This document shows, in pieces, positions 36,170-64,000 of a stretch of DNA of 64,000 bases. The translations under genes and the position numbers were made by a program. The stretch covers positions 124,001 through 188,000 of the IMG/VR virus record IMGVR_UViG_3300042261_002385. One strand, 5' to 3'. The notes under the pieces were generated by a model. The model did no database searches. It was not told where the DNA came from and saw nothing but the letters and a program-made list of their open reading frames with translations. Numbering within the stretch: the stretch's first letter is position 1; the number at the start of each line of letters is the position of its first letter.

Positions 36170-37366
36170 TTATATATTAATTTCTGGTTTAATAAAATTA
36201 TTGTTTTGTATACAAAGTTTAATCTTTTCAATAACCATTTCGGATGATATTTCAGTTGAACACTCATAATTTTTATTTCTTGGGCAATATGACCAACCAT
36301 TTTGACTATGATTTGGAACAGTTATATCATTCCAACAAGAATTACAAACATTAGGATTGAAGACTCTATATGGATTTGAAAACTCACTGTTTGGATTTGA
36401 AAAACCTGAAATCATAACAACTGGTTTATTGAGAGCCCAAGCTAACCATGAAAGACCAGAACCAAGACCAATAAAAAAATCACAATGAATTAAGTCCGTA
36501 ATTCTTTCTTGTAATGGAAAATCACCAGTTTTATTAACAACTCTATTGGGTGCTGAGTTGACAATTCCATCTTTTCCGAAATTGTCATTTTTATCTATAC
36601 ACAAAACATCATAACCTATTGATACTAAATAGTCAACAACTTCTTGCCAACCAGTTTTATTGTTCCAATATTTATACTGTGCCGTGCTTTGAACTCCAAT
36701 ACAAACATATGGTTTTTGATGGAACCTATCAGTGTTCTCAACAAATATATTTGGTCTTTCTTCAACATAATCCATACCCAACATATCAGAAGCAACTTTA
36801 GAAAGAGTTACCGTTCTAAGACTTGGAATTCGAGAGTAGAAACCTAAATCAAAACTAGCATAATAACAATGACATGGTGTATAAAAACAAAAGAATTTTC
36901 TACAAGAACTATTTTTTAGACCAGGAATTATTGTATTATCACCTCTATCTGGATTTGGTTCAACATCAGTAAATGAAATATCAGTATAGACATTTTCAAA
37001 CAAGTCTTTGAATGCGCAACTAACATATAATTCACATTTATGAAGTTTTTGAAATCTATCTACTTGAGCCATCCATGCAATACAATCACCTAAAGCGTGG
37101 CTATCAAAATTCAATTTAACTTTTTTTCCTTCTAAATTCATTTCATCAGAAAAAATTAAATTATCTTCAAAATATACTTTTACTTGATATTTTGTGAATT
37201 TATAATTGATAGAGTGAGGATCGTAACTAGTCAAACTCTCATTTGTAACAACATTTAAAAGTTCAGTCTTACCATCAGTGATTATTATGTTATATGACCT
37301 CCAATTAGGACAAATGATTTGAATATGACAACCATCGCAATAACTAACTGTAATTTTTGGACTCAT
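36170..37366 (-). CDS. Autotransporter O-heptosyltransferase-like (TibC/Aah, GT9-like) glycosyltransferase
   Basis: ALGDCIAW, KPYVCIGVQSTAQYKYWNN..GWQEVVDYL, FFIGLGSGLSWLAWA, PVVMISGFS, and Cys cluster CNSCWND...CPR...EC. Confidence 0.82.
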   Translation of the reverse strand: MSPKITVSYCDGCHIQIICPNWRSYNIIITDGKTELLNVVTNESLTSYDPHSINYKFTKYQVKVYFEDNLIFSDEMNLEGKKVKLNFDSHALGDCIAWMAQVDRFQKLHKCELYVSCAFKDLFENVYTDISFTDVEPNPDRGDNTIIPGLKNSSCRKFFCFYTPCHCYYASFDLGFYSRIPSLRTVTLSKVASDMLGMDYVEERPNIFVENTDRFHQKPYVCIGVQSTAQYKYWNNKTGWQEVVDYLVSIGYDVLCIDKNDNFGKDGIVNSAPNRVVNKTGDFPLQERITDLIHCDFFIGLGSGLSWLAWALNKPVVMISGFSNPNSEFSNPYRVFNPNVCNSCWNDITVPNHSQNGWSYCPRNKNYECSTEISSEMVIEKIKLCIQNNNFIKPEINI

Positions 37367-37396: not shown

Positions 37397-38035
37397 TTAG
37401 TATTTATAGTTCTTAGTAGATTTACGACACTTAATTTGACTTTTCACATTATTCATTTCTGAACTACCAAACTCAAGTCTAGCATTTTTTCTTTTCATTA
37501 CTAAGCCTTCAATCATATCAATTGGTGTTAGTTGATTGAAAAGATCGTAGAATCCATTAAGATAAGATTTGACTCGTAATACATTTTCAGAAACTGTGAA
37601 TAAGTAATCTTTTTCTGAATTAATTTGACCATAAAGCTGGTCTAAAAGACTGACTCTTTCTTCAAATGTTTTACCAACTAAATATTCGCCATCAAAGCAT
37701 AGAATATCAAAAATTACAAACTTATGATTGAATGGTTGACTAGTTTCATCCAATTTTGATTTATTGAGATATTCGCCATTAAGTATCATCCATCCACCAT
37801 TTCCTCTATAAAGAGACTTGACTTCTTCATCGGTCAGTCTAAAATTAGTTAGTCTTTGATTGTGACGGTTCATCACGATAAATTTAAGACCATTTGTAAA
37901 AATCAAACAGTTAGAACCATTGAGTTTTGGCTGTGCTAAAAGACTATCATTGTCCCAGAAGTTTAAATCATCCGGCGATATAGCATTTTTAGGTCGAGGA
38001 GGATAAATATAACGATAGTTTATATATTTTGGCAT
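37397..38035 (-). CDS. ATP-dependent ligase, adenylation domain only (RNA or DNA ligase)
   Basis: QPKLNGSN (motif I, Lys intact), LNGEY (III), FVIFDIL (IIIa), IEGLVMK (IV), KCRK (V); 212 aa. Confidence 0.8.
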   Translation of the reverse strand: MPKYINYRYIYPPRPKNAISPDDLNFWDNDSLLAQPKLNGSNCLIFTNGLKFIVMNRHNQRLTNFRLTDEEVKSLYRGNGGWMILNGEYLNKSKLDETSQPFNHKFVIFDILCFDGEYLVGKTFEERVSLLDQLYGQINSEKDYLFTVSENVLRVKSYLNGFYDLFNQLTPIDMIEGLVMKRKNARLEFGSSEMNNVKSQIKCRKSTKNYKY

Positions 38036-38039
38036 ATCA

Positions 38040-38071
38040 CAAAGATAGTAAATTAGGTATTAATTGACAAA
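38040..38071 (-). promoter_or_regulatory. Bacteroidota-type primary-sigma promoter
   Basis: TTTG-N20-TATCTTTG, ending 4 nt before the ligase ATG. Confidence 0.7.
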
Positions 38072-38091
38072 TTTGTAAAATAAATTTTTAG

Positions 38092-38162
38092 AGGTTGGGG
38101 ATAGAATTTCACTACCGTAATGGACTTTGCGAGTCCACGCCTAAATACTCAGCCACCCAACC
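38092..38162 (-). tRNA. trnC: tRNA-Cys(GCA), non-canonical
   Basis: GGTTGGG/CCCAACC acceptor stem, D arm GCTGAGTATTTAGGC, anticodon arm TGGAC-TCGCAAA-GTCCA, T arm GGTAG-TGAAATT-CTATC, discriminator U73; CCA not encoded. Confidence 0.8.
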
Positions 38163-38169
38163 GTGTTTA

Positions 38170-38310
38170 TTAAGAATTAATTTCCTCTTGAAGTTGATAC
38201 ATTAATTGTTGATACTGAAAATCTTGAGCCATTGATATCAAATCAGGTAGATTTTCAAAATCAATTTCAGGATTTTCTAAATAATCATTGATAACTTGAG
38301 TAGTGTCCAT
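38170..38310 (-). CDS. Small acidic hypothetical protein (46 aa, not in ORF track)
   Basis: MDTTQVINDYLENPEIDFENLPDLISMAQDFQYQQLMYQLQEEINS*; TATATTTG promoter box at 38325-38332; would be co-transcribed with the tRNA. Confidence 0.55.
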   Translation of the reverse strand: MDTTQVINDYLENPEIDFENLPDLISMAQDFQYQQLMYQLQEEINS

Positions 38311-38356
38311 TTTTTTTATTTATACAAATATACAAATAAAAATTAAAAGTCAATAA

Positions 38357-62840: not shown

Positions 62841-64000
62841 TTAAACGAGTGATATAGATTTAATATCATTATATAAAGCCATTTTATCAGTCTCCATAAG
62901 TTTCATAATATCAAAAACTTTATCAGAAAAACCAGCTAAACAAAAAACATTACTTTCAGGTAACTGTAAAGTTCCATAACCAGCCAAGTCCCAAGAGTAA
63001 ACAAACGGATTAGCATCAAATCTTTTCTTGTAAGCTTTGAACTCAGAAGAAGGACTAGTATAACCCACCCAACCTTGCATATCACTTAAAATAATAACTC
63101 GGTCATATTTTTTGTTTGCTTTTTGAAAAATTGATTTAAAGTTAGTTCCACCACCAGAATACTTGAAGCTGTTTCTGATAGACATAACAGAATCTAATGG
63201 ATTATATGATTTATAATTAGCATTTGTTGCAAAAGTCATAACATCACAGTTATTAACTTTAGCTAAAATAGCACCAAATAGTGACGCTATTTCAGATGCT
63301 CTACCCATCATAGAACCAGAAACATCCATAACTACTAGTGTTTCACCATCAAATTTAGGAACGTTCTGAACAGAAATTTCCAACGCTTGGTTGATAGCAA
63401 CTAAGACCTCTCTAACTTCTTTTGATTGACCAACTTTTTCAATCTCATCAAAAGCTGTAGTGAAACGAAAAGGTAAAACTCGTGATTTTTTAATTAAATT
63501 CTCATCAACTAACATCTCACAAGCAGCCTTAACAGATTGAGGAGACTGAGTAATTATGTTTCTTAGATTTCTAAGAAGAGCAAAATATCCAATCTTTCTA
63601 GTTTCAATCAACTCAGACCAAGCATTTGATTTTAAATCAGCTAATTCTTCTTCAGACTCAGCAACTTGACCAACTTTAGACAATTTAGCTTCCCAAGTGT
63701 CTGTATTTTTAAGTTCACCTTTAATAAGTAACTCAAGTGCCTCTTTATTTCTAAATGTAGGAACCGGGTGAACTAAATTTACAATATCCACAAGTTTAAC
63801 TTCTTTATTCTCACCTTTATACTTAGCTAATTGATAACCATCAAATTTATCAAAAGCCTTAGCAAATCCTTTTTTCAAAGCATTTGGAAACTTTGGATTG
63901 TCTTTTTCGGTTTTATAAGCCAAATAATAAGAAAGAATTTCGGTCATATCATCAACTCTAACGACAACTTTGTTGTAAAAATCTTTACCCCAATCAGCCC
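62841..64000 (-). CDS. TROVE-domain (Ro60/Rsr-like) RNA-binding protein with vWA domain, 5'-truncated
   Basis: Frame open to window edge (ADWGKDFYNKVVVRVDDMTE); YQLAKY, LVHP, YFALLRNLRN, VLPFRF, DVSGSM (MIDAS), GGGT, LSDMQ. Confidence 0.88.
   Translation of the reverse strand, partial: ADWGKDFYNKVVVRVDDMTEILSYYLAYKTEKDNPKFPNALKKGFAKAFDKFDGYQLAKYKGENKEVKLVDIVNLVHPVPTFRNKEALELLIKGELKNTDTWEAKLSKVGQVAESEEELADLKSNAWSELIETRKIGYFALLRNLRNIITQSPQSVKAACEMLVDENLIKKSRVLPFRFTTAFDEIEKVGQSKEVREVLVAINQALEISVQNVPKFDGETLVVMDVSGSMMGRASEIASLFGAILAKVNNCDVMTFATNANYKSYNPLDSVMSIRNSFKYSGGGTNFKSIFQKANKKYDRVIILSDMQGWVGYTSPSSEFKAYKKRFDANPFVYSWDLAGYGTLQLPESNVFCLAGFSDKVFDIMKLMETDKMALYNDIKSISLV

Follow-up and report, generated by a model that had tools for sequence, protein, structure and literature searches.

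We analyzed a 64,000-nucleotide stretch (positions 124,001 to 188,000; hereafter the window) of IMG/VR virus record IMGVR_UViG_3300042261_002385, a 436-kb genome of 31% G+C (G000), and found that a 71-nt element on its minus strand is a tRNA-Cys(GCA) gene, neither a sequencing error nor a chance match. Judged by sequence comparison, the gene belongs to a distinct subfamily of tRNA-Cys found in cells and phages, the C33 type, in which cytosine can occupy the position that in tRNAs generally holds the U33 of the U-turn. We give about even weight to the reading that this genuine C33-type tRNA-Cys works as a second cysteine tRNA, with escape from tRNA-cutting nucleases as its putative benefit. The main interest lies in a variant type that is shared with a cultured bacterium, and in a position 33 whose identity changes among C, U, and G against a fixed GCA-A37 and U73.

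Structure and authenticity of the C33-type gene

The element folds into a complete four-arm cloverleaf with stems of 7/3(+1)/5/5 bp and anticodon and T loops of 7 nt each, which are the dimensions of a tRNA. Read from the sequence, it comprises a 7-bp acceptor stem, U8, a D stem of 3 bp plus a G13·A22 mismatch, the D loop AGUAUUUA, G26, a 5-bp anticodon stem closing the loop U32-C33-G-C-A-A37-A38, a 4-nt variable loop, and a 5-bp T stem that includes one G·U pair. Minimum-free-energy folding returns the cloverleaf as the lowest-energy structure (−25.8 kcal/mol, z = −2.65). The major identity elements of tRNA-Cys, established for the E. coli cysteinyl-tRNA synthetase (CysRS), are the anticodon GCA and the discriminator U73; both are present here and in all 15 alleles described below. 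The gene departs from tRNAs in general at two places, namely C33 and an elbow that lacks the G18G19 and U54-Ψ55-C56 signature, with AGUAUUUA as the D loop and UGAAAUU as the T loop. The paired stems, C33, UGAAAUU T loop, U73, and missing CCA of the original prediction were all correct by direct reading, by ARAGORN, and by folding.

ARAGORN calls a tRNA-Cys(gca) at 38091–38162, and the covariance model RF00005, run alone on 84 bases, scores the gene at 42.0 bits (E 2e-8; gathering score 29); the other tRNAs of the genome score 33.8–71.8 bits with this model in a whole-genome scan. Default-filter RF00005 scans of the 64-kb window, of a 501-base stretch, and of the whole genome (E up to 10) made no call of the gene. 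The score obtained alone and the misses in larger scans together indicate that the speed filters lose a gene that the covariance model itself accepts, and the T loop is probably what causes the loss in sequence-only speed filters. The expectation that automated scanners may miss or down-score the gene was thus borne out for RF00005 in three default scans, and not for ARAGORN or for the covariance model applied alone. Filtered covariance-model scans can silently drop real phage tRNAs with deviant T loops. Megablast of the tRNA region against the phage collection gave no match. An exact match to the anticodon arm in L012 was due to chance, the covariance model finding nothing in that record, and three GC-rich matches from a metagenome pattern scan were likewise judged to be chance.

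Independent assemblies agree with the window. Contigs from three other studies span the gene, and among the differences listed in a comparison of 901 bases, beyond which lie 33 weaker ones, only U12→C and C11→U fall inside the tRNA; both are in the D stem and both preserve pairing, and C33 and the T loop show no change among those listed. Metagenomes from 16 studies, of freshwater, estuarine, and marine origin, contain the locus. We aligned 15 distinct alleles from the syntenic locus upstream of relatives of a ligase gene in huge-phage (Mahaphage-like) contigs, including LR745206 and LR756502. Standard pairs make up 97.8% of the cloverleaf cells across these alleles, and compensatory, both-sided changes occur in 13 of the 21 pairs, including all five pairs of the anticodon stem. 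The observed covariation was reached by none of 500 shuffles, and slid controls were only 27–56% paired. Sequencing error, which had been raised as a possible refutation, therefore fails: independent assemblies agree, and the deviations are conserved family traits. Diversity within the population around the tRNA was too low for a constraint test.

A chance ARAGORN call or a dead pseudogene would fit the silence of the default-filter Rfam scans. Either is refuted by the 42 bits obtained with the full model and by the covariation in 15 alleles; in addition, the gene is a GC-rich island in its intergenic gap, and independent samples carry identical copies of it; we assign this explanation almost no probability. 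The ARAGORN call, the RF00005 score, the cloverleaf fold, and the covariation together uphold the prediction of a real tRNA-Cys-type gene.

Phage alleles and bacterial relatives

G34, C35, A36, A37, U73, U8, A14, G15, A21, and C48 are invariant in the 15 alleles, as are most positions of the acceptor and T stems, so the invariant set takes in the tRNA core together with the CysRS identity elements, U73 and GCA. Position 33 is C in nine alleles, U in five, and G in one (Table 1). On the ligase tree C33 is found on deep branches and U33 arises in at least four places, and the changes of position 33 among C, U, and G do not follow the tree. The ligase of the G33 allele differs by about 20% from that of the window, yet the two alleles share the T loop UGAAAUU, which is limited to them; other alleles include the near-canonical T loops UUCAAAU and UUCGAAU. 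A T loop beginning with UGA is found in the window allele and L068 and one beginning with UGC in L130, and neither occurs in other alleles. Most alleles keep U54-U55, and G55 is present in two or three. C56 is replaced in most alleles, the window's included (by A in most, by U or G in two), and kept in four. L110, the only one of the 15 alleles with G18G19, combines C33 with this canonical GG D loop and the T loop UUCGAAU; C33 is therefore older than the elbow changes. The aligned positions 19 and 56 are U:A in nine alleles, A:U in one, and other combinations in five, which hints at a replacement tertiary pair. The tRNA of L006 resembles that of L018, and the L006 ligase is 92% identical to that of L007; tRNA allele types that do not follow the ligase phylogeny suggest an exchange of alleles. 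L130 (PLXT01000115.1), a 170-kb contig labelled as a Methanobacterium metagenome-assembled genome (MAG), has 34% G+C and a phage-like tRNA cluster, and carries a C33-type tRNA-Cys allele with the T loop UGCAAAU; the contig probably derives from a huge phage and ended up in an archaeal MAG through binning.

When species-representative genomes were scanned by pattern, the C33-type family turned up in Aquiflexum lacus CUG 91378 (Bacteroidota, Cyclobacteriaceae), where three tRNA-Cys genes, two with C33 and one canonical (U33, GG), stand within 700 bp and are flanked by housekeeping genes (cytochrome c, molybdopterin oxidoreductase). The canonical type is present in 49 of 51 Cyclobacteriaceae genomes and extra tandem C33-type copies in 3, with four different copies in one genome; in a phylum-wide sample, the strict C33 pattern matched in 2 of 401 genomes. 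The copies in Aquiflexum and other Cyclobacteriaceae resemble the phage alleles in the acceptor stem (GGUYGRG/CYCRACC), U73, GCA, A37, C33, the D loop without GG, the variable loop UUAC, and the T stem GGUGG. They differ in their canonical T loop (UUCGAAU or UUCAAGU), as opposed to the G55 of the window allele, and in a position 38 that is mostly G; moreover, they lie in tandem with canonical tRNA-Cys in a housekeeping context, whereas the phage gene stands alone. Outside the locus, every phage allele is closest to one of the bacterial C33 copies (identity up to 83%), while the mean identity of the alleles to the phage's own array tRNA-Cys is 48%. Because the chromosomal copies of Cyclobacteriaceae share it, C33 is a trait of the subfamily rather than a phage-specific rewrite. 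Our literature search returned no paper describing C33-type tRNA-Cys copies. Since relatives of the gene stand beside a canonical one in the cultured A. lacus, its role can be tested at the bench, and the C33-type locus offers a defined natural series of alleles. Another Cyclobacteriaceae genome (G429:C1:3047951-3048717) carries a tandem array of five identical canonical tRNA-Cys genes spaced 180 nt apart, as opposed to the diverged C33 copies elsewhere.

Within its own genome the C33-type gene is the exception. G000 has about 28–33 ordinary tRNA genes at 36–75 kb (e.g., 36956–75560), including a canonical tRNA-Cys(GCA) at 63.6 kb, and the C33-type gene is isolated, 87 kb from this array. All canonical tRNAs of G000 keep U33 and C56. 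The C33-type gene is the only tRNA gene of G000 without U33, and the same holds for G006 and G007 within the tRNAs sampled there. Its anticodon loop reads UCGCAAA, versus CUGCAAA in canonical tRNA-Cys, and the stem and D loop differ as well. G006 also carries a canonical tRNA-Cys, and in G008 and G009 the locus gene is the only tRNA-Cys.

A proposed second cysteine tRNA and its alternatives

Almost all of the 28 tRNAs that ARAGORN calls in G000 are followed by a trailer of the form N73-C-(A/U)-A-A, and only one of them (Leu-UAA) encodes CCA; the shared trailer looks like a genome-wide 3′-processing signature. The trailer of the C33-type gene points to the 3′ maturation route of the regular tRNAs. 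We found no CysRS and no class II CCA-adding enzyme in G000, a weak match to the CysRS-domain family PF01406 being a PPK2 kinase, and the phage would thus depend on its host for charging and CCA addition. In our model, the gene would be transcribed, probably jointly with an upstream 46-residue open reading frame (ORF), and trimmed like the other CCA-less tRNAs of the phage; a host enzyme would add CCA, and host CysRS, reading U73 and G34-C35-A36-A37, would charge the product with cysteine. It would then act on the ribosome as a second cysteine tRNA beside the canonical array tRNA-Cys. By analogy, C33 need not block decoding: the natural C33 of yeast tRNA-Leu(GAG) hardly affects its function, and the G33 of Candida tRNA-Ser(CAG) lowers decoding efficiency (PMC13492127). 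These are working tRNAs that, like the window gene, lack U33, but they are eukaryotic single genes in a fixed state, whereas the phage lineage switches among C, U, and G and remodels the elbow.

Known defence nucleases recognize both the anticodon stem-loop and the D loop, regions in which changes allow phage T5 tRNAs to escape (PMC12409363, PMC13056530, PMC10264068). T5 tRNA-Lys escapes the PARIS nuclease AriB through changes in its anticodon stem, with D-loop contacts mattering too (PMC12409363), and anticodon-loop mutations have been proposed as a means by which phage tRNAs evade anticodon nucleases (PMC10264068). T5 tRNA-Lys against AriB, T5 tRNA-Tyr against the retron nuclease PtuAB, and mycobacteriophage C1 tRNAs against VapC-type toxins resemble the C33-type gene in being phage-encoded, in keeping the anticodon, in changing the anticodon stem-loop, and in occurring alongside a sensitive tRNA that has the same specificity (PMC12409363, PMC11555353, PMC10264068). 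They differ in having an identified nuclease, a cleavage site, and a shown rescue, and changes like those of the C33-type gene at position 33 and in the elbow are not part of the published cases that we consulted. The traits of the family, namely a non-U33 residue, a D loop without G18G19 matched by A rather than C at position 56, and a fast-changing anticodon stem, would alter surfaces read by tRNA-targeting nucleases or other tRNA-binding factors and would spare the synthetase identity set. The benefit that we consider most likely would be a cysteine tRNA that remains usable when ordinary tRNA-Cys is attacked or limiting. Varied nuclease-read surfaces, a kept synthetase identity, and diversified bacterial copies fit such an escape model, and we regard nuclease escape as a plausible selective reason, with roughly a third of the probability. 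Phage tRNAs are now viewed as counter-measures to tRNA-cutting defences; few cases have been worked out, none for cysteine or for Bacteroidota.

Several observations weigh against a second cysteine tRNA that is maintained for nuclease escape. We know of no tRNA-Cys-cutting nuclease for these hosts, and no RNA sequencing run contains the locus. The variation of position 33 (C, U, and G) is explained by relaxed constraint no less well than by selection, and one phage allele has G33, which is reported to lower decoding in Candida tRNA-Ser (PMC13492127). The type-B alleles (T loop UUAGUUA) have also lost the U54-A58 pair, which may impair elbow-dependent steps. Two natural deletion variants, one lacking the whole tRNA (L074) and one its 5′ part (L063), indicate that the tRNA is dispensable at least in some backgrounds. 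Alleles diverge by 65% in anticodon stems, 15% in other stems, and 45% at ligase fourfold sites, but array tRNAs across genomes, in a loose comparison, also differ at 36–42% of anticodon-stem positions; we therefore make no claim of positive selection on the anticodon stem. The adjoining ligase is no evidence for tRNA repair, since its best fold matches are adenylation domains of DNA ligases, and a reading of the locus as an RNA repair cassette was dropped on this ground. G000 gave no match to RtcB and none to the Rnl1 model, which also matched 0 of 14 control genomes.

Some of these observations would equally fit an ordinary, redundant tRNA-Cys, still working, that has drifted under relaxed constraint since an array copy was gained and whose deviations are neutral. 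The canonical tRNA-Cys genes of G000 and G006 provide the redundancy, position 33 flips without tracking the ligase tree, deletion variants exist, and C33 is nearly neutral in yeast tRNA-Leu(GAG) (PMC13492127); furthermore, G008 and G009, where the locus gene is the sole tRNA-Cys, have U33 and a near-canonical T loop, the most canonical allele. However, C33 occurs in the deepest-branching alleles and in L110 with its canonical elbow, and hence predates any decay. Several diversified C33 copies are retained beside a canonical gene in bacterial chromosomes, the stems are 98% paired with compensatory changes, and an identical deviant T loop is found in two diverged lineages. Neutral drift is, in our judgment, unlikely.

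The RNA could also be charged or bound as a tRNA-Cys and serve outside the ribosome, either as a cysteine donor to a transferase or as a decoy for a nuclease, toxin, or modification enzyme. What stays fixed is precisely the set of positions that identifies the tRNA to its synthetase, whereas position 33, which relates to the ribosome, is free (C, U, or G). A parallel is the non-proteogenic tRNA-Gly of Staphylococcus, which has UGC or UGU for UUC in its T loop, no pseudouridine 55, and D19 for G19 (PMC7826273); the window allele, having lost the elbow signatures, recalls it in U54-G55-A56 and in U at the places of G18G19. In addition, bacterial copies mostly have Y32 and G38, a pair that could close the anticodon loop to 5 nt, and a variable nucleotidyltransferase-like ORF adjoins the tRNA in relatives. 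Staphylococcus tRNA-Gly, however, feeds Fem transferases in peptidoglycan bridge synthesis, and its T-stem pairs weaken EF-Tu binding, whereas no aminoacyl-tRNA transferase of the Fem, PEARL, or L/F type was seen among the near neighbors that were scanned. G55 is not family-wide, since only two or three alleles have it; U54-U55 is retained in most and C56 in several. A decoy, moreover, would have no need for U73 or for the 3′ trailer shared with working tRNAs. We consider a non-ribosomal role improbable. A broader idea, which we put forward tentatively, is that these genes form an undescribed, specialized tRNA class of Cytophagales and their huge phages, either a cysteine acceptor whose anticodon arm and elbow keep diversifying in an arms race against a nuclease or toxin aimed at tRNA-Cys, or a Cys-tRNA withdrawn from the ribosome for non-translational use.

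Neighboring genes and other tRNAs

The C33-type gene lies between two same-strand genes, a small acidic ORF and the ligase gene (Table 1), separated by short spacers. ORFs of 45–46 residues homologous to the small ORF occupy the same place in L004, L008, and L058–L084; the window's ORF matched no Pfam family and is probably co-transcribed with the tRNA. The motif TATATTTG is a candidate promoter of the small-ORF/tRNA transcript, and TATCTTTG is a candidate separate promoter of the ligase. Occurrences of the motif TANNTTTG in the window (107, versus 99 expected) show no enrichment, and hence these promoter calls are made from position only.

This arrangement, together with the lack of an encoded CCA, would suit a tRNA-like processing signal, at which RNase P and RNase Z cuts split the small-ORF and ligase messages and release an RNA without further use. 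Punctuation of this kind does not need an invariant GCA, A37, and U73, however. In L088 a promoter-like motif of the TATATTTG type stands directly before the tRNA, in L110 the tRNA has a terminator-like hairpin of its own, and the ligase has its own conserved upstream motif; the bacterial relatives, moreover, stand in a tRNA cluster rather than between protein genes. We thus hold a mere processing signal to be very improbable.

The original prediction had further proposed that the RNA may be a Y-RNA-like ligand of the phage Ro60/TROVE protein, and this proposal we regard as almost untenable. A TROVE protein is encoded in G000 and in all five relatives tested, and bacterial Y RNAs contain tRNA-like modules. 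The co-occurrence of TROVE gene and tRNA says little, because both are clade-wide, and the TROVE gene is 25 kb from the tRNA in G000 and 30–36 kb away in the five relatives. Bacterial Y RNAs of the YrlA type, which likewise combine a tRNA-like fold with a genome encoding a Ro60/TROVE protein, have a Ro-binding helix formed from their ends and no true anticodon arm, and usually lie beside rsr. The window gene, in contrast, is a full cloverleaf with an anticodon, whose ends form the acceptor stem only, with no further helix. No Rfam Y-RNA family matched the tRNA at any threshold, and none matched within about 1.5 kb on either side of the TROVE gene; furthermore, the relatives of the C33-type gene live in bacterial tRNA clusters.

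Table 1. Features of the C33-type tRNA-Cys locus, its alleles, and associated genes (positions are those of the window unless a record is named)
Feature	Position or records	Strand	Evidence or remarks
tRNA-Cys(GCA) gene, C33 type	38092..38162	minus, read 38162->38092	ARAGORN, RF00005, fold, covariation, independent assemblies
Anticodon GCA	38130-38128	minus	sequence
C33	38131	minus	sequence
T loop UGAAAUU	38111-38105	minus	sequence
Discriminator U73	38092	minus	sequence
3′ trailer C-U-A-A directly after U73, CCA not encoded	38088..38091	minus	kept in 12/15 alleles
C33 alleles (9)	window, L004, L006, L007, LR745206, LR756502, L088, L106, L110		
U33 alleles (5)	L008, L018, L019, L020, L100		
G33 allele (1)	L068-L073		identical in six contigs from six samples; T loop UGAAAUU as in window
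Natural deletion variant	L074:871-1476		small ORF fused to nucleotidyltransferase-like ORF, tRNA gone
Natural deletion variant	L063:849-913		first 20 nt of tRNA (5′ part) missing
46-aa acidic ORF, ends 7 nt before tRNA	38170..38310	minus	ORF list
TATATTTG, Bacteroidota-type -7 promoter-like motif, 14 nt before ATG of 46-aa ORF	38325..38332	minus	sequence, position
TATCTTTG motif, 4 nt upstream of ligase ATG, conserved at every ligase locus	38040..38047	minus	sequence, position
212-aa stand-alone adenylation (nucleotidyltransferase) domain of ATP-dependent ligase, motif I KLNGSN	37397..38035	minus	Pfam, AlphaFold
Insertion/deletion site between tRNA and ligase	38077..38085	.	joints in contigs of runs X4, X6
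492-aa ORF with TROVE (Ro60) domain	about 63399-64000, runs off end; G000:187399-188157	minus	homologues in 5/5 relatives

The 212-residue ligase protein is the conserved downstream neighbor of the tRNA, with Pfam matches to PF01068 (38 bits) and PF09414 (27 bits). Its AlphaFold model has a predicted local distance difference test (pLDDT) score of 94, and the best structural matches are DNA-ligase adenylation domains with a template modeling (TM) score of about 0.7. The protein is without an OB domain, and its family is very large in aquatic metagenomes, with 1727 homologues. Its closest database relatives are in the huge-phage genomes LR745206 and LR756502 (635 kb and 642 kb), both members of the Mahaphage clade, whose predicted hosts are Bacteroidetes (PMC7162821).

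At the insertion/deletion site between tRNA and ligase, close relatives carry 528–531 extra bases, which constitute a 181-residue nucleotidyltransferase-like ORF with a weak match to DUF6036 and with Bacteroidota nucleotidyltransferases among its Atlas neighbors. This ORF is seen in L004 (2432–2977), L008, and L058–L084, is truncated (133 or 79 residues) or absent in close strains, and was not found anywhere in G000.

Unusual tRNA genes also occur in the arrays. Array tRNAs with T loops of the AUCGUAA and CUCGAUA type, which have A or C at position 54 and U at 58 and keep C56, include G000:63953-64025 (Asn), 75336-75409 (His), and 75487-75560 (Phe), and are numerous in G007; the C33-type gene is therefore not the only one with a deviant T loop. 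In three relatives (G007:257262-257349; LR745206:388655-388741, L053; LR756502:402192-402278, L054), a tRNA-Cys-like gene of 87–88 nt occupies the tRNA-Ile/tRNA-Thr slot where G000 has its canonical tRNA-Cys. This gene has GCA, U73, and a canonical T loop, and its D loop contains an additional small hairpin; ARAGORN wrongly assigns it a 4-base anticodon, and RF00005 did not list it. Beside a tRNA-Met in G000, at 37118–37204, ARAGORN also calls an 87-nt tRNA with a four-base anticodon (agta).

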